Shown here piece by piece: positions 5,550-52,345 of a stretch of 64,000 bases of DNA. The stretch lies in assembly GCA_053919585.1 (NCBI GenBank), contig CM132785.1. The stretch is one strand, 5' to 3'. The stretch comes from Euprymna scolopes. Lineage: Eukaryota. The notes below the pieces were generated by a model. The model had not been told where the DNA came from, did no database searches, and was given only the letters and a program-made list of their open reading frames with translations. The position numbers were made by a program, and so were the translations under genes. The first letter of the stretch is position 1, and every line of letters begins with the position of its first letter.

Positions 5550-6994
5550 AATGCCTTTCCTTTTTTCTTGGGAGCCATCAGCATTGCTTAACGCTGATTG
5601 GTTGGACAATCTCAATCAACTTTGTGAGACCCTTTTCAAATTAATTCCAAAGAAGACATCGGACAGTGAAGTCCTGTTTTTTTGGAAATCCGTCGGGCCC
5701 AGCAAGCGACGTAAAACACTCAACTGTCCTTAAGTGTGGAAGGCCTTTATTGAGAGGTTGAAATTGGAGTTAAAAAAAAACACACCATTTATTGAAGACG
5801 TTAACCCTTTCAGAGAAAGGAGACCAACGAAAGAAGAAGTGACCGAGCTTGTCACTAATTATTCCAAGCTGTGGACGGGAGACTCGTAAACAGTGATTTA
5901 TTTCTTTGTCCCCCTTTCAAACGGATGAAGAAATAGCAAGACAACACTTTTCAGAGAAAAGGAAAATTATTTCAAAAAGAAAGAGAAACCAACCCTTTAA
6001 AAGACAGGGAAAACAAAAAGAAAGAAATAAAAGATAACCCCCCTTTCAGAGAGCTTTATTTTTAAACCTTTTAAAGGTTTTGTTTGTTTAAAAAAAAGAG
6101 ACAGGAAAGAAGAGAGGAAAAGAAAAGAACTTTGAAAGAACATTGCAACCTGCATGTTTTTCTTTTCAGAAAAAAAAAAGGAGAAAATGACTTTTTGTTG
6201 AAAGACTGGATTTGAAAAAAGAATATTTTCTATTTTTTATGTGCTTTTATTTCAGCCTTTCTGTCAAGATTTGTTTTTTGTATTTGTTTTTAATTTTTTA
6301 TTTCATGTTACTTACAGGTCTTTAAAACCTGAGCTTAGGAAACTATAAGCAACCGTAACTATTTTCTTTAAATAAATTCGGATCATTTTAAATTCATTTC
6401 GGATGTGTATTTCTTTTGCTCATTTCTCTTTGCTTGTTTAATTTTTCCCTCCCCCCCTTTTAATTTGGTACCTTAAAAGACGGATTTTGGTGACAACCCC
6501 CAAATCCCGACACTATTTGTGGAATAGAAAATTTTGCGAAAGTGTTTTTTATTTTTTTTTTTTTGATCACTGTGCGTGATTTACAGTCATCAAGTTTGTG
6601 GATATCAAAGTATCTCGTTGTGTAGTCTATTATTACTACATCTGCTTTATTGTATAAATAAAAAATGTTTGTCGCAACTTTCGTCCATGGTGTTACTTGT
6701 ATTTTATGGTGCATTAGAGGTTCTTCAGTGGGTTTTATTATTCCCATTTTTGTCATTTTCTCAAGTTCCTTTTTTAATTTTGGTTTCATGCCAAATGGGA
6801 TATTTCTTGAGGTATTTATAACGTTTTTTTTTATCTGGGTTTATAGTTATGTGGTGAGTGACTGGTAATTTTCCGATGTCACCAAAGCAATCTTTGTGTC
6901 TTCCTATTATAGGAATTTTTGTACTATTGTATGCAGTTAGTGTTATCATTGTTTTTGTTAATTTAGGTTTAGGTTGTATTGTGTTGTAAATCTT
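5240..6994 (-). pseudogene. Internally deleted Gypsy pol remnant, split by a solo LTR
   Basis: LTAYNSTKIPIIG (protease), CFGDIGKLP and KKELEKMTKMGIIKPTEEP (RT N-terminus), PWTKVATNIF...FSIPQIV then ISDNGPEY (integrase), with the solo LTR between the last two motifs. Confidence 0.8.
5317..6512. mobile_element. Solo LTR (1196 bp) with 4-bp TSD CTAT
   Basis: Inverted termini tgtcggaattt...aaatcccgaca; CTAT at 5313-5316 and 6513-6516; removing it rejoins the integrase motif. Contains a (CT)n tract. Confidence 0.85.
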
Positions 6995-9791: not shown

Positions 9792-12700
9792 CTAATAAAC
9801 CACAACAACGAGCCGGAAGTGATTTACCACACTCTTCAAATAATAACTACAGTAACGACAAAATAAAAAACTGTAGATTCTGTTCATTCTCACATTTCCA
9901 TGTAAACTGCCCTGCATATGGTCGAATCAGCAATAAATGCAAGAGACAAAATCATTTTGCGAGTAGATGTCCTGCTAAAAGAGTAGTACAGAAAGTGCAC
10001 CAGGAACACAATGAGGTATCTTCTACAGACGAAGATAATTGTGAAAATTATGTGGATAGCATCTCTGCCAAATTCTCATCCAAGAAGAAAAAAATAACAA
10101 AAATCCACAAAGTTAATGCCTTAGCTGAAGATTGGAACATTAATTTACAAATCAATGGGACGAACATACAATTTAAAATGGAATCCGGCAGTCAAGTTAA
10201 CATTCTTCCAATAAAAGATTACTACAGATTATCGGTTCGTCCAAAATTTCATTCAACCAACATAACACTTTCTGTCTATAACGACACAGCAATACCAGTT
10301 CAAGATAAGTGTGTTGCTCAAGTAATAAGAAATAATGTCAAGTATCATGTAATGTTTGTCATAGCAGATACATGTCATGTTTGTCATAGCAGATATATAT
10401 TCATCTCCAATACTAGGACTAAACACCTGTACTAGTTTCACCCTAATAAAAAAAGGTATGCAAAATTAACACAAATAACAGTGATTTTCTCTCTGAATTT
10501 AAGGAATGCTTTGGAGAACTTGGAACTCTGCCTGGTGTTCATCACATCACAATAGACCCAGAAATTAAACCTGTCATAAACCCTCCACGGAATATTCCAT
10601 TTGTACTAAAGAAAAAATGAAAAAAGAAACTTGTTTCATTAAACCTGTATCAGAACCAACAGAATGGGTATCATCACTGGTGGTAGTAGAAAAACCCAAT
10701 GGTTTCCTTCGTGTATGCTTTGACCCACGGAAGCTTAACAAGGCTATAAAAAGAGAGCATTATAGGTTATCAATAGCATCAGACATAATACAGGAAATGG
10801 CAGGTGCGAAATTTTTCACTAAGCTTGATGCATCTAATGCATTCTGGCAGATTAAAGTTGATGAGGAAAGTTCCAAACGTCTCACTTTCAAGTCACCTTG
10901 TGGACGCTACAGATTCACACGTCTACCATATGGCATACACAGTGCCAGTGAAATATGTCATGCAAAAATAGCAGCTATCATAGAACATGTTGAAGGATGC
11001 AGAAACTCACAGGATGATATCATTTGGGCAGACACGCCAGAACTCTTACAAAAGAGAACTACTGAAGTTCTGAATGCTATAAGGAAATCCGGCATGAAAC
11101 TAAATCAATCAAATTGTCAGTCCAACATAACTGAGTTAACATTCCTAGGACACAAAATATCCAGTAGAGGGGTTGAACCTGATAACAAAAAAGGCAAAGC
11201 GATCATGAGCATGCCAAAGCCAGCAAACAAAACAGAACTCCAGCGTTTTCTAGGCATGATAAATTACTTTGGAAAATTTATTCCTAACTTATCAAATGTA
11301 ACTGCACCTTTTCGCCTCTTGTTGGAAAAAGATAATATGTGGTCTTTTGATAAACCACAGAAAGCTGTTCGATGACTAAAAAAATTAGTTACACAGAGTC
11401 CAACATTAAAATACTTTGACCCAGCACTTCCCATCAGAGTCTCTTCAGACGCATCAACCCTAGGACTTGGGGCTATGTTGGAACAAAAACACAACAATAA
11501 CTGGGCTCCAGTGGCATTTGCTAGCCGTTGTCTTACATCAGCTGAGGGCAACTATTGCCCGCTTGAACTGGAAATGTTGTCTATAGTATTTTCATGTTAA
11601 CATTTCCATGAATATGGGCAACGCGTTCTAATAAATAATGATCACAAGCCTCTCAAAACTATTGTCACAAAACCAATTTCTAAAACCCCACCCAGAGTAA
11701 AATGTTTCCTATTATGCTTACAGAAATACAATTTCGAAATTGAATACACTCAGGGCAAACTAATTCATGTTGTTGATACACTCAGCCATGCAGCACAAAA
11801 GTACAACAATCCAGAAATCTCTGACAAAGAAATGAACTTTTTTGTCCACTCCCTAATTTCTTCAATACCCATTAGCGACAAACGTCGACAACAGCTCATA
11901 ACTCAGACGGCTAATGATGAAACATTACAACAACTGCAACAGCAAATCAATGATGATCAGGATGGCCACAGCATCAAAATAATCTCAACGCCTGTCTTCA
12001 ACCATATTTTAATTACAGAGATGACATGACATACCAGGAAGAACTACTATTAAAGGGTCAACAAATTGTTGTTCCAACCAATATGCGAGCAGAAATGCGT
12101 AGGATTTTACATCAGGCACATCTTGGTATTGAGAAAACCAAATCCAATGTTAGGCAGTCTCTTTTTTGCCAAAAATGAACAAAGAAATAGAGGACATGAT
12201 AAAAAATTGCGATTCATGTCAACGCTATAGCAATCGACAAAGTTCAGAGCCAGAAATATGGCATGACATTCCTGACCAACCATGGCATAAGGTTGGTACA
12301 GATCTCTTCAGGCTGCAGGGGAAAGATTACATCATGGTAGTGGATTACCACTCAACATTTTTTGTATTCAGCCATCCCATTGATACAACTGCATCAACAG
12401 TAATAACCTGTAAAAAACATATCTTCTCGAGCCATGGTATACCCAAACAGGTAATATCCAATAATGGCCCACAATTTAAGTCTCAACAATACAAGGAATT
12501 TGCTCCAAAATGGGATTTTTTCCATGTAACTAGCAATCCAGAATGCCCACAATCAAATGGTCTAGTCGAGAGAACCATCCAAACAGTGAAGAAAATACTG
12601 CACAAATGTTTCCAGACTGGAGACGATCCATATCTTGCTCTACTAACCTTACGTACAACACCTGGCAAAAATAATAAATCTCCTTCACCAGCAGCTAAAC

Positions 12701-13371
12701 TGATGAACCGCTAACTGAGAACACTTCTTCCAAGCATAAAAAATCATGGTTATGATCTTTGCAGTTCATCCCCAACTAACATGCAGAAGGTAAAGCAGCA
12801 TATCAGCAATAAGCATGTACTGCCTTCACTAAATAAAGATAGAGGATCACATCAGAGTACATGATGGGGAAACTTGGTCCAGGATAGGCAAAGTGATTGA
12901 ACATTGCTCTCAACCAACGTCATACTTGGTACTGATGAATAATGGCAGAACTATACGCCAAAACCGCCGAGATCTACTAATAGTACCCCGTTCAAAGGTA
13001 CCAACAGCACACCCTTACCCTGACACAATATTTAATTTACCCAAGCAAGTTCATTAAACAAGAGCAGGAGCACCAAACCCAGCCACTCCAGAGTTAGGAG
13101 TTTGATCAAGGTCAGGACGACCAATACATCAATCCAGATGGATGCAAGATTATATATGTTAAGTGAACTTGCATTCCAATAGCAAAGGACCTTGGGAGGA
13201 GGGGATGTTATATATGTATATATATATACATATATATATGAAAGACATTTACTGCAGGTTGACAGTTGAGGACACTTCCGGTAACTGGGGCTTCCGGTAA
13301 GATGACGTTCTGGAAATAAAAGGTGTTTTAAACTACTCGGAGTCAATCTCTTTCCTCATATCTCTTCCACA
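9792..13371 (+). mobile_element. 5'-truncated Gypsy (Mag-like) retrotransposon with decayed gag-pol and short 3' LTR
   Basis: Gag knuckle CRFC...CPAYG; protease FKMESGSQVNIL; RT WVSSLVVVEKPNG, KLDASNAFWQI, SQDD; RNase H DAS..GLGAML; integrase HLGIEKT, PWHKVGTDLF, PQSNGLVERTIQTVK. PPT gggaggagggga precedes tgtta at 13206; the LTR end (~13371) is approximate. Confidence 0.85.
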
Positions 13372-22850: not shown

Positions 22851-25839
22851 ACAATACCATATTGAAAACCGTAATAAACATCATTTCCGTCATACATATC
22901 CTTCTAATATCAAATTCTTGTCAAAAGATAAATAACTGACGCTGTGGATGAAAAATATATAATTATAATGAACAAATAAAATAAACATCCTGCTAAATAT
23001 GGATTAGTTTGGCTCAGATTTGCATGAAGGCAGCATGCTTTTCAAGGAAAAAATTATTCTATATATAGAGGACAAATGAATACCCAATGAAATGAAACAA
23101 GCTAGTAAGATAAGCCATGGTAAAGGAGACCAGGACCTAAGACACCTAAATTCTACTGGCCTCATGGATCGACAGAAAATGTCACCTGAGCACTTTTGAA
23201 ACTTCTTTGAAAGCCAGCTACGAGTGAATATCAATTTTAAAATCAACAGACTTCACCTTATGTGATACTGCCAGACTGTGGAACGTGTAGCCAGACGTCA
23301 GTGAGTACTGGAAATGATAGTCGGTCATATTGATGGAGTTTTATGGGATCATGTCAAGTTATATGAATGGAGTTGTTCAAAATCATGTTGAGTCATATTA
23401 GCAGATTTGTTTGTGATCGTGACAGGTCATGTTGACAGAAAAGTTTGGTACAGTGTCAGGTCGCACTGATGACATTGTGTCAAGTTGTGTAGACGGAAGT
23501 GGTTGTTTTACATTTGTTGTTCAGTTGACTTGATGGTTGTCACAGTCATAATTGGTGTGTGTGTGTGATAACAATATATATTTGGGGGGAGTGTCTTCCC
23601 TTATGAAGTCACAATAATAAATTAAAATATATTGAAAAATTGGTAATTCTATTTACAAGATTTGTTGTTCACTCATTTCAGAATTATGTAATAATTTTAA
23701 ATAATTTAAATCTCTTAATTATTTTGAGAATATTTTTGTTCTTTGCAATTCAAAAGATTATAGCATATATGAATGAAAAAAGTTATAGTATTGAACTAAA
23801 TTCCACTTTGTATTTAAAAATTCATGTAAATTCATTAAAAATATGGTATAATTAAAAATATAAAATAGTAAATCTGATATATTAAAACTCTTTGGATTTG
23901 TACAATATTAAAATTCTGACTGATTACATATATTTTCTACAGATTTCCAAAAATGGAAATGGAATATTCAAAACTTTAGTATCGATAGTTCTGTGGAAAT
24001 CTGACTGTGAGTTTATGTTTGATAGATTTATTAAATACATGGGTGCTAGCATATACAAAGTATCCTTTAAAAAGGAACATTTTTATAAAACATCCATGAG
24101 GTAAAAAAGATTTTAATTTCTTCTTTTCAATATTTTCATACGCTGAAAAAATTGAAACTTCATTAGCAGTTTATTATGTTTCTTCTTTTGTATGTTATAA
24201 AATTATGATTATAATATTAAACTATATTAAAGTAACATTGTGTTACATAAAAGTGGGTAAATTCTATGATTCGCTTTGGAGGTCCTTAATATTCAGAAAT
24301 TATCGGGTTACCAAGATGAAAGACATCCACAATAATCAGCGTGATTTAGTTCCTTATATGAGTGCTTTGTTGAGTTGATGAGTATCTAGTCATATTCTTT
24401 ATGTCACATGTTTCTGTTTTGTGAGAAAGTTATAATATATATATATACACTCATATTATGAAAAATAGCAGGAGGATGTAAGCACATTTCCCAGATTAAA
24501 AACATTAATTCTTTTATTTTAAAATGGCACAATAAAAGTGAGGTGGAAGGAGTCAACATCTGTTGTCACAGGGAGAGGGGCAAGTGATGTTCTTCAGAAA
24601 ATCCACCCTATGCAATTTTACAAGACAGGGATTGGAAAACCAATAAAAATACAGGATCACTTTTGTTATGGAAGGGGTTTTGATAAAATAATAGAAAAGC
24701 GAATAGCAGTCCAATCCAATAGTTCAGTCCAGTGTCTCTGGTGAGCAGAAAAACTCTAAGGAAACTAAATATAGCAGAGTAAGAAAAAGGGACTTAAGAA
24801 AAAATTCAGTTGATTCATGCAAATTACATTTTAAATAAACAAATCAATACCAAAACCACATTTCACACTCGCTTTCCCTAATAGATTTTCCCTTCTACAC
24901 TTTTCTTTTGCCATTTCAGAACGAGTTCAAGGTAATTACTTTTCTTTAAAATAAGTTTACAGTTGCATGAACATGACTTCCCATTGCAATGTGACTAACT
25001 TTTTAATTTTCAGATAAAATGTTGAGCTTGCCTTGTAAATAAAACAAAAAGACATTTCTGGTTTTAATAACTTCTGCTTCTTGATTTTCGACTCCTTCTT
25101 CTCTTTTAATTCCTTTCTCTTTCTTTCCTTTCCATCATTATCTTTTTCAAACTATTCTTTCACGATCTCATACAATATTTGAAAAAAAAAACAACAAATC
25201 ATATTTCATAAAAAAAATTAAAGACAATGAAACAATAATTTATTTTGCATACAAATTAAATAAAACTGAATTAAAATGTTCGTTTTTTTATCCAATATAA
25301 ATAATATTCAAATTGGTTGCCAAATTCTTATTCACTTTTTCTGAGAATATTGTACAATTACTCAAGTTAAATATCATGTTGTATTTTGGTAACAAAAACT
25401 GTATGAAAAGAAATAAACGACTATATTTAGAAATACAAAAAGCAAAAACTGCACTTTTTAAAAAATCCAGAAATTTAATTTTAGAAATGTTTTTCTCTCA
25501 TTCAATAAAAATTGATTTCTGATATGCCAGAAAAGTTGTTAAAAGTTATATTATTTTATGATTCATAAAACAAAATTTTCTCTTAAACATTTTTCATAGT
25601 TTCATTTCAGTTTTAAACTGAGTTAATATTGTATAATCTAAAATTGGATCTGTACATCAGCTTTGTTCAATTAAAAGTGTATCAACATTTCTTTTATGAA
25701 AAAGATCTAAATATTCAATTCTCAGAGTCAAACCGTTTCTTTTAAGTGCAATTTCAATACTCTTGTATTAGTTTACCAAGTATATTCTATTTAGGATTTA
25801 TCACACATTAAATTACTTAAATGTTCATTTAGTATGTAT

Positions 25840-26510
25840 TGTAACCAACTTGTTTTCTGTTTAAGAGATAAATCCAATACATGACAATAATATGTTTTTC
25901 TTCCATTATGAGATTTATTGCAAAGCAGAACCATACTTTACATTTTGGTTTCTTTTTCAGCAGACTTCTATACGATCTCAACATACTACATCTTGGTATA
26001 AATAAATAATTTCACAGGAACCTTAATCCTTGTATCCTCAGCGATATATTAAATTTCTTGGAAATAGAAACACCACATATTCTACAAGAATCTGATTTCT
26101 CACATTGGCTTAGATATGATGCAATTTATGTGTAAATAAAAACCACACACTTTCCAGCAATATAGTTTCTCTTTAGTATAGGTTTGTATATGCAGAAGCA
26201 CGTGTCTTATGTTTAAGACTACACACTGAAACACAATATAGTTTAGATCATGCAAATGGTTGCCTCTGTTACATTTGCTGCGGCATTGTAAATGAATCAA
26301 ATACTTTATGAAAATATGGTACCTCTTTAACCACAGTATATTATATTTGTTTAAAAAGGATGAGCCACATACTTCAGAGGTATATAGTTTCTTAAACATA
26401 ATGTATCTGTGTAAAAGTAAAAACATTTTACATGTAAATAATTTTGGTGAGAATCTGAAATAGTATGCAACATATTGGATTTCTTTGAAAGCAAATACTT
26501 ATCAGGAATA
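25840..26510 (-). pseudogene. Decayed C2H2 finger repeats downstream of the zinc-finger gene
   Basis: KKLYTSEVCGSSF, HIQTYTKEKLYCWKVCG and EKSDSCRICG, broken by stops and frameshifts. Confidence 0.7.
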
Positions 26511-26518
26511 TTTTTTTC

Positions 26519-27932
26519 TATTTTTTCATTTTTCTTATCATTTTGTTTAAGCCAGGGATGGGGCATCCTACCAGATGCCAAACATACACCTGCTATTTTA
26601 GACACTCCAACCGAGAGATCTTTTTAAGATTCTACCCGTCCCTTTAAGTGCAATTGTTTGAATCTCCTTTGCACTTGGTTTACCTGGTATATTTGTAAGA
26701 TAGTTTGTAAAATTCTTTTTCATAAGTCCGGTTGCTCCTATAATTACTGGAATGATAGAGATCTTCTTAAGGTTCCAGTTTCTTTTCATGTCATACATAA
26801 GACCCTGGTATTTGGTAATCTTTTCCCTCTCAGCTCTGTTTAACCCAGCATCATTCGGGACACTAACTTCCACCAAGGTTGCTTCCTTCTCCTTCTTGTC
26901 CCATATTACAATGTCGGGTTTTATAGCTCCGTTTTCTAGGTACGTGGCTGTAGGGATTGCATAGTCATAGTGGATGATATATGACTTGTTTCCGACTGTT
27001 CTTTCGGGTATATGTTCCCATGACTTCTTGCTGCATTCGATATTTAACTTATTGCAGATCGTCCAGTGGAGATATTTGCATACTTCATTGTGTCGCATTG
27101 TATAGTAGCCGTCCCCTAGCAGAACCTTACAGCTAGAAATCAGGTGGCTCACACTCTCTACTTCTGTGTGGCAGAACCTGCATTTGTTGTCTTTGCTGAG
27201 ACCACTCATCTTTTTAAACACATTGGTCATCAAGCCTTGATCTTGGGCAGCTATTATAAACTTCTCCTGGTCATAGTGGAGCGATCCATCCTTTAGCCAG
27301 CTTATAGACCCTTCCTTATCAATATAGTCTTGGTTATATTCGTCCAGAAAATACTTGGCCCGTTGTTGGTTGGTCCATTCTTCAACTTTCTTGTCATGGA
27401 AAGCTTTAGTGTATTTCTGGCGACTTTTTCTGGCTATTTCAGTCGCAGGTATCTTTTCTGTTTCTGTCTCGCTTGTAAGACAGTCTTTCCCAAAATGTTT
27501 GGCCAGTTTTGTGATGGATGTTGTTCTACTGGCTCTTGATTCCTGATGTTGGTGTACCATCTTGAGAGTTGGGTTTTTAGAGCTCATCAGATATTGTCCG
27601 GTGCTCACAATAATTGCACGATGTTGATGGTCAATCTCCGAGAGCCCCATACCTCCTTTCCATCTGGGCAGATACATTCTAGACAGACACTGGTTTCTGT
27701 ATATTACTTTATACATTGTCAGCATTTTACATGTCTTAGTGTCTAGTCTATTTATGTCTTTTTGTGGCCAGTCGACAATACCAAAACTGTATGTTACCAC
27801 TGGCATGGCTAGTTGGTTAATGGCAGTTATTTTGTTTCTGCCTGTGAGTTCTGTTTTGCATATCTTCTTGACTCGGCGTATGTACTCACTTCCAATTTTG
27901 TTTCTCTCTTCTATGCCAAGGTATTTGTATCC
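26519..27932 (-). mobile_element. 5'-truncated RLE-type non-LTR retrotransposon (R4/Dong-like); 444-codon open frame 27932-26598
   Basis: GYKYLG (RT motif 7), MYLPRWKGGMGL (thumb), CRFC-x8-H-x4-C knuckle, RHN, KPDIV, EVSVP and EREKITKY (PD-(D/E)xK nuclease). Short 3' UTR with an A-rich tail. Candidate TSD GAAAAAA at 27933-27939 and 26512-26518. Confidence 0.9.
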
Positions 27933-28717
27933 TTTTTTCCAGTATGCGTTCGCATATGGCGCAACATATTTTGTTTCTGTGTAAAAGAGGAGTGACATAC
28001 TTCACATGAATATGGCTTTTCTCCAGTATGAGTTTTCATATGGCGCAACAAATGATGTTTCATAGTAAAAGAAAAACCACATACTTCACAAGAATATGGT
28101 TTCTCTCCAGTATGTGTTCGAATATGTTGCAATATTTTTTGTTTTGTTGCAAAAGAAGACCCACATACTTCACAAGAATATGCTTTCTCTCCAGTATGTG
28201 TTTGCATATGTTGCAACATACTGTGTTTAATTGCAAAAGAATAACCACATACTCCACAAGAATATGGTTTCTCTCCAGTATGTATTCGTAGATGTACTAA
28301 CATATTTTGTTTCTTTGTAAAAGAAGTGTCACATACTTTACAAGAATATGGTTTCTCTCCAGTATGTGTTCGCATATGTACTAACATATTCTGTTTCTTT
28401 ATAAAACAAGAGCCACATACTTCACAAGAATATGGTTTTTCTCCAGTATGCGTTTTTATATGTAGTAACATATTTTGTTTCCGTGTAAAAGAATAACCAC
28501 ATACTTCACAGGAATATGGTTTCTCCTCAATATGTGTTCGCATCGGTGGCAACATGCTTTCTTTCCTTGGAAGAGAAAAGCCACATAGTTCACAAAAATA
28601 TAGGTTTTCTCCAGCATGTTTTCGCATATGTGGCAGCCTACTTTGTTTAATTGGAAGAGAAGAACCACATACTTCACAAGAATATGGTTTTTCTCCATTA
28701 TCAGATTTAGTGTTCAT
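27911..28717 (-). CDS. C2H2 zinc-finger protein, 9 tandem fingers (finger 2 lacks the first His)
   Basis: Repeats of [16 protein letters not shown] with TGEKPY linkers; the last ~6 codons are LINE-derived. The true start or upstream exons are uncertain. Confidence 0.9.
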
Positions 28718-28921
28718 TTTATAAGTTGAAATATTTGAGATTTTTTCAGTACAATTTGAGTTTTCTATGTTTTCTTATTGTACTTTTATGCTAGAATTGG
28801 AATAAATTAAAAAACACTTTTTTCAATTTCTCATGCATTTAGAATTTCGTAGATCTGTTAAAATAGTCATGATTTATACTTTTCTCACATTTTAAAAGAA
28901 AGCATGACTTCTTATTGAATG

Positions 28922-28922
<1 letters not shown>

Positions 28923-28977
<55 letters not shown>
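28923..28977. repeat. (TA)n microsatellite
   Basis: Direct; similar tracts at 16378-16423, 41990-42069 and 58201-58279. Confidence 0.95.
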
Positions 28978-28980
<3 letters not shown>

Positions 28981-31867
28981 TATGTGTTACTTTTCTAGTA
29001 TTTGTGAAGCTGGAATTTTGCATTTATTATATGATATGTGTGCTTTAATTATCCATGAGTGGGTATTCAATGAGTAGTCCAGCTAATGTTAGATTCAATA
29101 ATACAAATGATTTTTTCAATTTATTATCATGAAATGCGATTTGATGAATGAAAAAAAATCGTATAGCTCACAAGGGTATGATTTATCTCATCCAGACTGG
29201 TACCTTTAGGCATTTGTTCTTTTTTTTATTGGTTGCTGGATATTCTGCAAAATTTTAAAAAGTACAAATTTCAAGAAAAAATGATTATTTAATATGTTCT
29301 TTTCAAACTAAAGTATTTTTAAGATGTTATGACAGTATTGTCACGGTTATCTTTTGTATGGATAAATAAGATATTTGATTAGAAAATAAAGATCTCATAA
29401 ATTTCACAGTCGTGATAGGTAACAGTGATACCCTTATTTACAAGCAACATTCAGTGGAAAGATTAAAAATGTAAGTATAGTTCAATAGTCATAGGAAAAT
29501 GGATATATCTCTGGTGTTAAAACATGGCTTCCGCATCTGCAAACTAAAAACAAAAACACCAATTAAAAAGGTATTAAAACATTTTTATTTTAATGACTTG
29601 ATTACTTTATTAAAATAAATTTCTGTGTGAAAACATATTTAATAATTTAATGATACTCATTTTTTGATTTCCAATCCGATAAAAGTATAATTTATGTGTA
29701 TGAATGCTTTGGCATTTGGTGATTATTGAACAAAAATCTGAGAATTTTGCTTATACACATATTGATATTCATTTATTTCAATGTGTTTATTTCATTTAGT
29801 AACTGATGAAGAAAGTAGCCATACTTTCCAAGTTAGCTGAGTGCAATTACAAAGTTATTCCTAGATTAGTTGACAGATATACACAAAAGCCTTGCTACAG
29901 CCAATTATGATAGCCAGAAACTATGTACAAATTACATAGGTTAAACTGTACCATGCAAAACGTTTATGTTAACTGCAATATAAATGAGTTGTTTGCACTC
30001 AATCATTTTGAATATGACTCTGAAAGCAATGTTTAATTCAAACTTTAAAAAATGCTTGAAGGAAGACTTAAAAGCAACGAGAATTAATGAAGACTTGAAT
30101 GCAATTATAGTTGAAGAACGATATAAAGAATCAAATTTGCAAGTTTTTGGCAAATAAACAAACTATCTTACTTACATTGTGACGGAAAATTATAGCTTAA
30201 AACTGATTCTACATGGAAGACTTGCAACAGCAGTCCTATTCCAAATCGACTCATGTAGAAAAGATAGTAATGTAGTAGTTGATTCTGGGTGCTTCTACAC
30301 TATACTGAAATATTCTATACTTAGCAAAGCAAACTGTTTAGCTGATTACTCTTGGTGTTGCAATGCAACCATATAGAGCTGATAAGTTAAAGCATGGTCG
30401 TAATTTAAATCAGGATATTGGTGAAAGACGTGCTTAGGTTTGAGCTGCTGCTAAAAATAAATGCAATGAAAACTCTTGGCAGAATATCTTGCTCTAAGTC
30501 AGGCAAAGTACAATTAGTAAAAAATTTGTTTCTGTATGTGCAGCTGCATTGAATACAATGCATCTAGCAAGCTTAAAAATAATGTATAAATGCTGAAAAC
30601 AGTCAAGAGACATTTTATCAAAGAATTATAAGCCATGGATAATTGTTCTCTATGAACAAGAAAATATTTAATTTTCAAAATTGTACTCTCGTAGATGCAA
30701 ATCATCAAGCAGAGCAAAACAGAAAAGTGCACCATATGATGAACTACTAGATCATTCTTCATATTTATGCATACAGTGCAAACTAAGAGAAATGAAACAA
30801 TGATGTCCAAGTATTTGTTGTGATAACTATGATCTGCCTATTTTTGACAGCAGATCATAGTTAAGCATGACAGTACCTAGTGTTTATCCAGGGTGGGATT
30901 TGTTCTGAATGTTACTCTGACAATAACAAGGTATATTATGGATGCAGCTTTATAATGAGATAATCAAATCAAGAAATAAATCTCAGTACATATTTACAAA
31001 ATATATGAAAGAGTAACACCATAACCCAATATTTCTGAATATTTTTAAACTTTTGATTAGTGTCTCGAATTAGAGGTCTAGGGATTGAATTGTATCCTAT
31101 TTTGGAAAAGGATTTTCAGACATCCCAAACATTATTGCCAGGGGGAATTTTTTCTCTCTCTGTAAATACTCAGTAAATGACCCTCTCTTCCTTCTGAGTA
31201 TCCATCAGCAAACTAAGCACATTGTCAAAAAAGATAGAATAACTTCACTGGCATATGCTAATGTGCATCAATAACAACAGGATACAACAAGCTGATTTAT
31301 TTAAAAGCGAATAGCAAATAGACTCTTAAACAGGTTCCTAGAAGCTTGTTTGCAGATATGTATTCCTGCCTGTGACAGCTGACTCAAATATAATGACGTC
31401 ATTTGAACACCAGCCACACTGGGATGAAACGGATGAGATATTAAAGGAAACTGGCCGTTTCTAGGAAAAACTGATCTTTGAATCTGCAATTGCCATCTGT
31501 TGATAGTGAACGTCCTTTTATCCAGTGCAGAATCGATACAAATTAGAGAAAAATTGAATCCTCAAATTTATGGTAAAGTTTAGTAATAATGTTACCCACT
31601 ACTTCACACATCGATTGTGGGTCAATAAGGTTTGAAGTCTTATGACTCCAACAGTGAGAGGATTCTGCAGCCTTTATTAAGTATCTTAATTCTGACAACA
31701 ACACTAATGATCAGTTTTCCAGTGTGTATACAAACTATAGGGAAGGCTTTCAACAGATCAAGCAATAAATAATTGTTGCATTGTATGAGAGGTTGTTTAT
31801 TGGTACATGGTCATGTGTAAAGATAATATCCGTGGTTTGACAGCACTAGCGATTGCATTTCAAGTGA

Positions 31868-46901: not shown

Positions 46902-49900
46902 ATGGATGATTTCCGGACCTTGAAGGGTGTTAGGGCGCTCATGGACTCCAGAAACGTGTTAAAGGAAGATATTTCCCTTAACACGGACATGTTGGAAGAA
47001 CGCGAAGGTTTGAGAAAAAAAACCTTCCAGGAGGAAGAAGCTATAATTAAGGAGTTGCAGATTGAGGTCCGCTCCTTAAATGATAAAATTAAAGGGCTGT
47101 GTATAAAAGCAGAACTTGATTTAAGGGAGTGTGGATTTGTTGAGGAGCAAAGGAGGGAAATTGGCTTTCGAGCTAATATTAATGATCGCCTTGCCGACAT
47201 TGAAAACTCTATTGAAAACCCCACCACATCACGGAAAAATGAACCTACCTCTGTACCTTTGCTTTCTGTCCCCAAGTTGCAGTGTGCCACCTTTAGTGGA
47301 ATCAATCCTTCCAAATTTGAATATAAAAATTTTATTGCTCAATTCAAAAACTGTACTGAGTCTATTGATTCCGGCAGGGCAAAATTAGCCTTATAGAAAG
47401 GGTATTTGAGTGACTATGCCTTGCAATTGGTTTCCCATCTGACCTTGGAGGATGGTAATTACGATGTAGCAGTGGATTTGCTGACCAAGGAATTCCTGGA
47501 TGTCCCCTTTATAATAAGTGAGATCTTCAAGCAGATCATTTCTACTTCTCCTCAATATGACCCTGAATTTGTGGCTGTGAAGCGATACCTTGCTGAGGTG
47601 AGAGCGGATTTATCCGAATTGAGGACTTCATATCTGATAGATTTTTTTGAGGAGAACTCCCCCGGATTTTTGCTAGTCAGCCATATTATATATGAAAAGT
47701 TGCCAGTTGCCTTGAGAAGGGAAATTAACCACAGAGTGGGCACGAGTTACCCGTCTCTAACACAAATTTTTCAAAATTACAATGAGGCAGTTCGTGCTCT
47801 GTCTCGAAATAAAAAACTTTTTCGGGTTACGGAAAACCCCTCGAAGAATGATAAAGGGCAGGTCAAGACCTATGAAAAAAAGAATGGTGATGCTGCTCTA
47901 CAGAATTTCACTACAAGCTCTTCTGGGGCATATTGCAAACTTTGCACATCACGTGGCCACACTATGCTAAAATGCACCAAGTTTGCATCTTATGAAGCCA
48001 GAGTTGAGAGGTGCAAGCAGCTAAAACTGTGTACAGGATGTTCCAGCTTAAAACATAAAAGTGAGAATTGTCCTGGACTCCAGAGCAAATCACCCCTCAC
48101 GTGCAGCTTATGCCTTTCAAAGGCGCATATTGCACCCCTGTGCAACACTAAGAGAGTGGTTTCTCTATTCTCTCACGTTTATGAAAACGAAATCATATTG
48201 CCTGTTGTAGCTATTTCTTTAAATTATGGATCTGAGAAAGCTACTATTAACTGCCTATTGGACACAGGAAGTCAGCGTTCATATTTTTCTAAGAAAATAT
48301 TAAAGGAGCTGAAGTATCCTGATGGAAATTCTGATCCAACCGATTATCAAATGAAGACCTATGCGGGTGTGACTATGAAGCGATTTGAACAGGTTGTCTT
48401 GAACGTTACCGTGGGAAAGGGGAAACAACTCCCTATTCCTGTTTTAATCGATGATGGATTCAGTATGCAGTTTGAGTTCGCCAGCTTTGGCCAAGTGAAG
48501 TCCAACCTGAATGAGTTGAAACACAGATTGGCATTTTCAAATGAAAAACAGGGTGATTCCATAACAATTCAGGGTATCCTGGGAGTTGACATATTTCAGT
48601 TCATGGAGGGTTCCAGAATCATTAAATGTATGAATGGACAGGCCTGGGATTTGCCTCAAGGGATTGCCCCATTTGGTAATGTACAACACTTTTTATATCC
48701 TCATCAAGTCAGTCCTGTGAGATGTGGAATTTCCAAAATAATTGTCAATTATCATACTACAATATCCAAATATGCCCATTGCCCTGAACGACAGTTGAAT
48801 TCCATATTGGAACCCAAGTCTTCCTACCCGGATCCGTTTCCAGATGTATTTGAGAATTCCAACGTGGAACGGAATTTGGAAAAAATGTTTGCTGTGGACT
48901 CAGCTGCTGCTTCCCATGACGAAGAACTAATTGGTGATTATGACAGAAATAGGATTGAAATCTTCAGGAAGTCTATCGAATTCAGGGACAATTCTTATTT
49001 CGTGGATCTACCTTGGCATAAAGACAAAATCGATTCCGTTCCCTCTAACTATCAAGTCGCTCTTAAAGTGCTTGACAGAACAATGCTTTCATTGGAGAAA
49101 AGGGACTTGGATAAGACCTATACTGATATATTTCTTCAGCAAGAGAGCGAAGGGATTATCGAGAGAATTGAAGTCGCCCCACAAGATTTCTGCAAATACA
49201 TTTGGATACCCCATCGACCGGTCTTTAAGTCGGATCAACAGGTTACCACTAAAATCAGGCCTGTTTTTAACTGTTCGTTGAAGACCGGGGGTGGTTACTC
49301 CCTCAATGAAGCATCTTATCCGGGTGTGAACATGATGAATAACATGCTTGAACTGTTGCTCTTATTTCTTACTAACAAATATGTATTATTGGGAGACATA
49401 AGAAAGGCATTTCTTATGATCAAACTCCGGTCGGTTGAGGACAAAAACAGATTTTGTTTTTTCGTAAAAGATGGAGACAATTTGCTTTGCTTCCGATATT
49501 GTACATTGATATTTGGCTTCAATGCCAGCCCATTCATTTTAAATTACGTTCTCAAACACCATGTCAGCCGTTTTCCGAATGATGCATGTACTGAGATGCT
49601 GAAAAATCGATTTTATGTCGACAATTTATGTATGACCAGCAATTCTTCTGAGGAAATAATCAGTCTCTATAGGAGTGCCGTGCCTCGTCTGCAGACGGGA
49701 AATTTCCAGTTGAGATCGTGTAACTCCAACTATGAACCTCTTCGAGACATTATAACGGAGGATGACAGAATCGTGCAGCATGGTTGCGAGTACGAAAAGG
49801 TCTTGGGATATAAATATCACCCTGAATTGGATACTATTAGCATTGTTAACACTATGGTTCAGAGGAACATACTCTCAAAAGGGATATTTTGGCCCAGACA

Positions 49901-52345
49901 GCAAAAATATTTGACCCACTGTCACTATGTGCCTCGGTTACAATTAGGGCAAAAATACTTCTCCGAAGATTGTGGTTGCTCAAGTTGGGTTGGGATGAAA
50001 AGGTTCCTACTGACATAATGACTACCTGGTCGAATTTGGCCGAGGACCTTTCTGGTCTAGGTGATCTATTTTTTACAAGCCATGCTATAGACACTGGTAG
50101 CCAACTGAAATTATATTTGTTCTGTGATGCGTCACCACAGGCTTATGGATTTGTCATATATGGCGTGCAAAATGGGAAGTCTCACATAATATTTTCCAAG
50201 GTTAAAGTGGCCCCGATGAGGACAAAGACATTACCTATGATGGAGTTGCTTGCAGTATATATTGCATTCAAGGCTTTAACTATGATACTGAGATCCTTCT
50301 CTGGTGTCAACATAGAGGACGTTTTTGTTTCTGTGGATGCGCAAGTTGTTTTGTCATGGTTGCTCACCGAGAATATAAAGGCAAAAAGTCTGTATACCAG
50401 AAACAGAATTAAAGATATTCGAGAAATGAAGGAGAAGTTGAGTGAGGAATTTGGGTTGGGCATTCATTACAAATATGTTCCTTCTGCCGACAACCCGGCT
50501 GACCTTCTTTCTCGTGGTATCACTCTGGAAAAGTTTAAACAGGGATTGGACTACTGGACATGCGGACCTGCGTGGCTTGTTGAGCAACCTGAGAAGTGGC
50601 CTACGAGTACTTTGAGCTGTCTGAGTCCGGAAAATAAGTGTCATGTGGAAAGTGTTTTCCATAATACATTGAGTGAAGCTGTTAGGGAACCACTGATTCC
50701 ATTTGACAGGTTCTCGGACTTCAACAAGTTGTGTCGATCAACTGCTTTCGTATTCAAGTTTGTGCATCGATGCAGAAAAGTGAAGGAACATTCAGATCCA
50801 AAACAGACAGCCACGAATTACCTGATAAAGATGATGCAATTGCAATCGTTTGAAAAGGAAATTGCTTATTTGAAGAATCCTCTTGACAGGGAAATCCCAG
50901 TGCTGGTGAAGAATCTTAACGTTTTCATCGATTCTGATGAGATTTTGAGAGTGGATGGTAGAATTGCCAATTCGACAAGATATGACTACAATTTAATCTA
51001 TCCAATATTGCTTGCAAAACATCACTCTCTTACAAAATTACTGATTATGGATAGCCATAATCGATGCAGTCATTTGGGTATTGGTACGACAGTGACCAAA
51101 TTGCGGTTATCCGGATACTGGGTCCCACAGGCAAGACAGTCTGTGAAGACTGTGATTTCTAACTGCAATACCTGTAGGAAATTCAACAGCCTAGCCTTCA
51201 AATACCCCAAATTGACAAATTTGCCAAAACACCGTGTTAGATTAATCAATCCTTTCCAACACACAGGCATAGACTACACAGGTCACATCTGGGTACAAAG
51301 AGATGGAAAGTCTCATAAAATGTATTTATTAATTTTCACATGTATGAACGTGAGGGCTGTCCACATTGAACTTGTACCTGATATGAGCACACAAGCCTTC
51401 ATTCAAGCCTTGATTCGGTTTTCAAATACCTATGGAGTTCCCAGTCACATATACAGTGACAATGCACGTTCCTTTAATGCAGCCTTAGGTGGTGATGTAA
51501 TTAAACATCACATAAACAGTAATGAGTTCTGTAACTCATATTCAAGCGCTGGCATTAAACACATAAAAATACCCTTATACTCCCCTTGGGTTGGAAGTAC
51601 TTGGGAAAGAATGATCAGAGTGATAAAGTCATGCCTATTCAAAACACTTGGCCGATCTAAAATCAGTTATTTTAACCTTCTAACCCTTCTATCAGACATC
51701 AAAAGAGCCGTGAACTCTCGACCTCTGACCTACAGATGCTCTACCGATATTGATCTGCTTCCCTTAACACCCAACTGCTTCACTCATCCAAATATAAACT
51801 GTGAGCTCTCCTTCCAATCTGACACACCCAGTTTGGTTGAGACAGAACCAATAACTAGGTCTCTCCTTGTGAGTACCTTGGAAAGCAGAGAGGAATTAAT
51901 ATCTAAATTCAAAGAGATGTGGCACGATGAATATTTGCTAAGTCTGAGGGAGAGTTGCAAGGATTTACACGAAATCGAATTTCACAATAAAATAAATATC
52001 AACGACGTAATACTCGTCAAGAATCCGGCCAAGTCCAGGCCCTTCTGGAAGCTGGGCAGAGTTATTGAGCTATTTAGTAGCAACGATGGCAAGGTTCGTT
52101 CTGCTCGAATAAAAAGAGGTGATGGTGCAGTGGAAACACATAGCCTCAAACATTTATATCTGTTGGAGTTATCACTCACTCATAACCACTTTCCTGACAC
52201 CCCAGCAGATGAGGAATCTGATGAATTTGCATCCCTCCCTATAGAAGAATGTAGGGACCCATCGGAACCTTCAGAAGAAATGGCCAATTACAGGCCTAAA
52301 AGGATCAAGAAATCCACATCTAATCCTGAATACATTTATTATTAA
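46902..52345 (+). CDS. BEL/Pao gag-pol polyprotein (~1814 aa if repaired); one in-frame TAG (47394-47396) and one frameshift (~49880)
   Basis: Three Cys/His gag knuckles; protease LLDTGSQRSY; RT DIRKAFL, FGFNASPFIL, FYVDN; Pao RNase H FDPLS, FCDAS, NPADLLSRG; integrase HLG..YW..C..C, GIDYTG, SDNA, WERMI. Confidence 0.92.

Follow-up and report, generated by a model that had tools for sequence, protein, structure and literature searches.

R2 elements encode a single ORF with a reverse transcriptase (RT), thumb/linker, CCHC knuckle, and C-terminal PD-(D/E)xK nuclease, and insert into a multicopy target at a single nucleotide position, in sense orientation. Their copies are frequently 5'-truncated and have variable 5' junctions with small target duplications or deletions. 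Related lineages of LINEs with a restriction-like endonuclease (RLE), namely R4/Dong, NeSL/Utopia, R8, and R9, have switched their target among repeated sequences. Among the coding motifs of animal genomes, the C2H2 zinc-finger linker is the most repeated. The LINE family described here shares these features of R2 and its relatives. The locus under study lies on the minus strand of a 64,000-nt stretch of Euprymna scolopes DNA (assembly GCA_053919585.1, contig CM132785.1; the window), where a C2H2 zinc-finger array adjoins the nuclease part of such a LINE. The initial annotation, made from the letters alone, had put it forward as a candidate natural zinc-finger nuclease, offering three readings: an in-frame fusion hidden by a homopolymer error, a frameshift-regulated fusion, or the chance result of a recent insertion. 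According to our analysis, the locus very probably represents a young, truncated LINE copy that homed to the linker after finger 9, with the fusion protein not made and the open nuclease frame reflecting the youth of the copy.

Contigs from one DNA run and three RNA runs were aligned onto positions 25300-31200 of the window. Table 1 lists the features of the locus, together with the junctions found at related loci.

Table 1. Features of the finger/LINE locus (window coordinates) and LINE-host junctions at related loci from other samples
Feature	Position	Strand	Remarks
C2H2 zinc-finger ORF	27911..28717	-	268 codons, 9 units of 84 bp
Probable target-site duplication, upstream copy	27935..27939	-	GAAAA(AA)
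A_AAA_AAG heptamer	27932..27938	-	at host/LINE junction; X_XXY_YYZ phase, zero-frame codons AAA and AAG
Open LINE-frame ORF	26598..27938	-	446 codons, -1 frame relative to finger ORF
5'-truncated R2-superfamily (RLE) LINE copy	26519..27934	-	~1.4 kb; same orientation as finger gene
Deletion site in window copy	27904..27905	-	27 nt (9 codons) absent compared with family full-length transcript
Probable target-site duplication, downstream copy	26511..26518	-	flank opens with GA, last two bases of linker Gly codon
Decayed zinc-finger units	26000..26510	-	60-70% identical to intact units; stops and frame changes
AATAAA, likely poly(A) signal of chimeric transcript	25914..25919	-	
L001			3' tail followed by GT GAG AAA CCT TTT TCT TGT .. 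and three intact fingers
L002			second tail followed by GT GAC AAG CCA CAT AAA TGT
L003/L004			3' tail followed by G GTT AAG AAT TAT GAA TGT .. and up to four fingers
L005			3' tail followed by T GAA AGA CCT TTT GTA TGT
L006			3' end without finger
L007			3' tail, then tandem LINE, no finger
L008			5' junction at HTG: ..CAC ACA GGT GA|C CAA CTA..
L009			one array with three tails; after each tail, GT GTT AAA AAC TTT GAC TGT; fingers between

The finger ORF consists of eight canonical C2H2 units and a finger 2 in which Pro replaces the first His; the nine fingers counted originally are present as units, but only eight are canonical. Its terminus, KKDTNTLA*, lies inside the LINE, with the stop codon at 27913-27911. 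The decayed units beyond the LINE are the former continuation of the finger array, now 3' untranslated. A (TA)n microsatellite was found at 28924-28990, ~200 bp upstream of the finger ORF. An Rfam search of 25800-29100 gave a single match, to mir-297, which was rejected as spurious since it is below threshold (24 bits vs 90) and falls on this (TA)n run.

The adjoining piece is a 5'-truncated R2-superfamily LINE with a restriction-like endonuclease. It contains the RT end (YKYLG), thumb/linker, CCHC knuckle, RLE, and an 80-nt A-rich 3' UTR, and the order from the RT C-terminal region through the CCHC knuckle to the RHN / PD / (D/E) / K nuclease motifs is preserved. A zf-RVT domain match was also obtained. 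The motifs CRFC..H..C (253-270), RHN (282), KPD (340), EVSVP (357), and KITKY (373) of the nuclease frame all fall on columns that are invariant in an alignment with seven relatives, in agreement with the CCHC knuckle and intact RHN/PD/E/K endonuclease described before. The -1 frame is indeed open through the nuclease, for 446 codons counted from 27938. A strict R2 element would lie in 28S rDNA; here, the flanks are zinc-finger units, with no rRNA match.

A full HMMER scan yielded 6,448 relatives, the full-length ones being 1,100-1,200 aa long with RVT_1 in mid-protein. The alignment pairs residues 4-442 of the window piece with the last ~440 residues of full-length relatives, and the copy begins at residue ~700 of ~1,130 in a full-length relative, just before YKYLG. 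This motif comes after the RT palm, and the YxDD palm is located ~65 residues further upstream in full-length relatives. The RT active site is therefore absent, as had been stated, because it lies upstream of the truncation point. For a full-length relative, the nearest solved structures were R2 retrotransposon proteins. Full-length relatives also possess a Myb-like W..EE motif, and Pfam recognised no N-terminal C2H2 finger in them. The closest protein-database relatives of the LINE piece are 74-77% identical. A fixed 40-aa extension before YKYLG, shared by several relatives, was discarded as an artefact of gene prediction, the predicted starts being at a conserved Met within the RT.

No further copy of the LINE was detected in the whole window by blastn and tblastn. 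Other elements in the window are three long plus-strand ORFs (164, 870, and 818 aa) at 46902-52345, which appear to form an intact-looking LTR retrotransposon, and retroviral-type pol fragments at 10617-12714.

The family is very abundant. While the single-copy flanks had a depth of 16-21 in the DNA run, the summed depth of the LINE interval was ~5,800-6,000 in its 5' part and rose to 150,000 at the 3' end, a value that includes family members at 95% identity or more and does not equal copy number. Such a gradient toward the 3' end is what a very abundant family of mostly 5'-truncated copies should show. Together with the 5' truncation and the short target duplication, it is one of the marks of target-primed reverse transcription found at this locus. 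The G+C content of the LINE piece (40.5%) is above that of the surrounding DNA (31%), which fits a recent arrival; that of the finger ORF is 34%.

Compared with the majority variant, the window copy has ~7 differing sites and a 27-nt gap, and is ~0.5% diverged. Within the LINE frame, the majority-variant table gave five nonsynonymous and two synonymous differences, seven sites being too few for a significance test. One difference changes Arg to Cys at a column invariant in seven aligned relatives, and the gap at 27904 takes out nine codons of a conserved stretch. On this evidence, the changes specific to the window copy look neutral. The youth of the copy, ~0.5% from its master, accounts for the open LINE frame.

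Across the junction, the minus strand reads CAT ACT GGA AAA AAG GAT ACA AAT ACC TTG GCA TAG; the junction itself, the finger stop at 27911, and the phase of the heptamer were thus confirmed. A_AAA_AAG is the sole in-phase slippery heptamer within the finger ORF. The full-length LINE is represented by a 3,492-nt RNA contig, which agrees with the window as far as 27934 and from there follows its own sequence (..GGGCAGG), so that the LINE-derived part begins at 27934. Of the six-A run, 27938-27935 come from the host/target side and just 27934-27933 match the LINE; the heptamer bases 27934-27932 match the LINE family. At the junction point, the LINE master has ..CTA GAA GGG CAG GAA GGA TAC AAA TAC.. 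The slip signal is conserved neither there (CAG GAA GGA) nor in the other linkers within the finger ORF (GGA GAG AAA). As judged from these comparisons, the heptamer was absent from both parents and is a by-product of the insertion joint.

The occurrence of GAAAA(AA) at 27939-27935 and at 26518-26511 makes a target duplication of 5-7 bp likely, its exact size being ambiguous owing to the A run. The 3' flank of the LINE, GA AAAAAA TATTCCTGATAAGTAT, aligns to the unit consensus GA GAGAAACCA TATTCTTGTGAAGTAT. Before the insertion, the site would have read CAT ACT GGA AAA AAA TAT TCC TGA, with the ORF already ending in HTGKKYS*. Given this presumed earlier stop, the insertion would merely have exchanged a short tail.

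RNA contigs without differences from the window were found for finger units, for the junction, and for the unique region of decayed fingers at 26022-26518. Coverage was not seen further down than 26022, and neighbouring unique DNA had essentially zero RNA depth. No single contig spanning the whole gene was seen among the RNA contigs. These observations suggest a weakly expressed chimeric mRNA, in which the finger ORF would extend to 27911 and the LINE piece and the old fingers would form a long 3' UTR.

If the assembly had lost an A, the true run would contain seven, and both frames would be joined in a single finger-nuclease protein. Miscounts of homopolymers are common in long-read assemblies; the RNA contigs, however, leave this explanation with virtually no probability. 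A 168-nt contig of run X17 covers 27887-28054 with 0 differences and six A's, and in run X25 a contig spanning 27916-28028 has one substitution and, again, six A's. These are assembled contigs with a depth of 3-6, not raw reads, from RNA libraries, which can contain DNA. In the contigs of all four runs, no indel entry was present at 27933-27938, and none had seven A's. The proposed count of six versus seven A's was thereby answered in favour of six, and the hidden in-frame fusion is refuted.

There is at most a slim chance that the junction acts as a working -1 frameshift site, at which some ribosomes make a 706-aa finger-guided nuclease (nine fingers, thumb, CCHC, and RLE). In its favour are the correct phase of the heptamer, the -1 ORF that stays open across intact RLE motifs, and the presence of the junction in RNA contigs. 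Furthermore, a distal structure at 27895-27815 folds somewhat better than shuffled sequences (z = -2.3). It starts, however, ~37 nt from the heptamer, and an MFE fold of 27938-27810, limited to pseudoknot-free structures, gave no hairpin 5-9 nt downstream; the sole nearby pairing was a 4-bp stem overlapping the slip site. All well-studied eukaryotic frameshift cases have a downstream structure (PMC4066793). Heptamers of the type X_XXA_AAG work best in E. coli and are the least efficient in eukaryotes (Sharma et al., PMC4066793), and the efficiency of A_AAA_AAG has been tied to a single bacterial tRNA-Lys (Atkins et al., PMC5009743). The heptamer of the window ends in G, whereas the efficient eukaryotic type ends in A, C, or U. 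The slip site arose from the junction and is missing from the LINE master, the LINE part carries neutral-looking damage, and a C2H2 Pfam domain was found in none of 113 database relatives of similar length. A frameshift-regulated fusion is consequently unsupported, the heptamer being junction-made, of the weakest eukaryotic class, and without a nearby stimulatory structure. Any A-rich heptamer allows some spontaneous slippage of ribosomes at a low rate, and on sequence alone trace amounts of the fusion protein are conceivable; beyond such background slippage, the fusion of fingers and nuclease is presumably not made. Because the frame changes between fingers and nuclease and the finger frame stops at 27911, the two do not form the one polypeptide of a zinc-finger nuclease. 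This, the six A's, and the neutral-looking LINE part leave the headline of the initial annotation without support.

The position of the insertion is informative in its own right. The 3' end of the window copy meets the linker within the Gly codon, on the strand of the finger gene. Contigs of the family share the window sequence down to 26517 and diverge beyond. Five DNA contigs from Euprymna scolopes continue past the LINE end with GA GAG AAA CCA TGT TCT.., and their consensus parses as the LINE tail ..AAAAAATA, GA as the end of the Gly codon, and Glu-Lys-Pro of a finger linker. Additionally, nine contigs from other samples were compared, the encoded LINE proteins of which are 47-75% identical to that of the window. 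Seven of the nine showed a finger-linker junction, always on the gene's own strand, and at each linker-joined locus the break was within or right after the Gly codon (Table 1). The finger sequences differ widely between loci and are therefore host arrays, not element cargo.

This recurrence makes it highly unlikely that an ordinary, untargeted LINE insertion into a zinc-finger exon took place, with position and orientation meaningless. Such an event would gain from the very high abundance of zinc-finger units in this genome (the summed depth of DNA contigs is high across 28058-28451) and would agree with the two related loci that have no finger at the 3' end (L006 and L007). It would leave unexplained why the same Gly-codon nucleotide and strand are used in the window, in five same-species contigs, and in most related loci, with quite different finger sequences next to them. 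The junctions compared here show homing of the LINE lineage to the zinc-finger linker motif, at the same nucleotide and in sense orientation. The two exceptions make linker targeting a preference, not a strict specificity. A biochemical basis of the homing may be presumed, and the habit is suggested to be common to several LINE lineages and hosts. In full-text searches of the literature, no published zinc-finger-linker target for such elements was found. As the window insertion fits the linker pattern, its place and orientation follow from target preference. Of the "chance result of a recent insertion", the recent insertion holds, but the place is not due to chance, linker codons being targeted in sense.

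Very probably, the locus arose by targeted insertion, as follows. A young member of the very abundant R2-superfamily LINE would have been inserted by target-primed reverse transcription into the linker after finger 9, in sense orientation. The primary nick would have been made inside the Gly codon (G|GA), at the nucleotide common to other copies and to related LINE lineages. The 5' joint would then have connected the A-rich host linker (GGA AAA ..) to LINE ..AAG GAT AC, yielding the target duplication of 5-7 bp and, as by-products, the A_AAA_AAG heptamer and the -1 frame relation. The finger ORF consequently stops nine codons into the LINE.

Some related loci carry more than one insertion. The array at L009:1801-4120 contains three LINE tails, each in sense orientation; the stretches between and after the tails hold four, one, and two fingers. 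Similarly, L001:2225-2690 contains two short derivatives at successive linkers of one array, each consisting of the last ~25 LINE codons and the tail. At L007:1992-2130, only GT separates the tail of one LINE from the 5' end of a second, full-length LINE of the same kind, so that the two stand in tandem. Such an arrangement would agree with recognition of the target through sequence upstream of the nick.

Regarding 5' junctions, two at L009 are in frame with the fingers (..HTG|YQDLKNDL.. and ..HT|AINQLAIPV..), and for the first of these a gene caller predicted a 192-aa finger protein. In L008:2740-2800 and L009:2560-2600, the LINE is truncated at nearly the same point (..INQLA..), in frame after the linker Thr/Gly codons. 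This recurrent in-frame joint may have formed via microhomology between host CAC ACN G and LINE ATT ACA GCC. Altogether, three of the four observed 5' junctions were in frame (chance p about 0.11). One may speculate that linker-homing LINEs repeatedly create finger/LINE chimeric frames, such as the in-frame ones of L008 and L009, and that some of these, or the window locus via slippage, are translated as finger-guided RLE proteins. We regard this as a very remote prospect. If true, it would mean natural zinc-finger nucleases and a route for RLE LINEs to gain new DNA-binding heads.

The locus very probably represents linker homing by an RLE LINE, and as such is a clean and datable instance. The insertion truncates the finger array, which thereby receives a new stop codon and a new 3' UTR. 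On related contigs, one array is split by repeated insertions, a process that could steadily drive the turnover of large zinc-finger families. Furthermore, R2-type integration machinery is under development for genome engineering, and here the linker would offer a new target specificity of natural origin.

Compared with engineered zinc-finger nucleases, in which fingers are combined with the FokI cleavage domain, the locus likewise has a finger array adjoining a PD-(D/E)xK-type nuclease in one transcript. In contrast to them, its fingers and nuclease do not share a frame, a stop lies nine codons past the junction, and the nuclease normally works within the whole LINE protein bound to its RNA; the window locus gives no sign of function or selection. 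With the bacterial A_AAA_AAG sites of dnaX and IS elements, the junction has the heptamer and its phase in common. Those sites operate with a single tRNA-Lys and Shine-Dalgarno or hairpin stimulators (PMC5009743), whereas no stimulator is present here. For R4/Dong, NeSL/Utopia, R8, and R9, none of the listed target classes consists of a protein-family coding motif. R2 itself targets 28S rDNA and not, as here, the linker-coding sequence of a protein-coding gene family; full-length relatives also differ from it in the Myb-like W..EE motif without a Pfam-recognised N-terminal C2H2 finger, and the present family in being very abundant. These differences aside, an R2-type LINE lineage lands on the C2H2 linker much as R2 uses rDNA.
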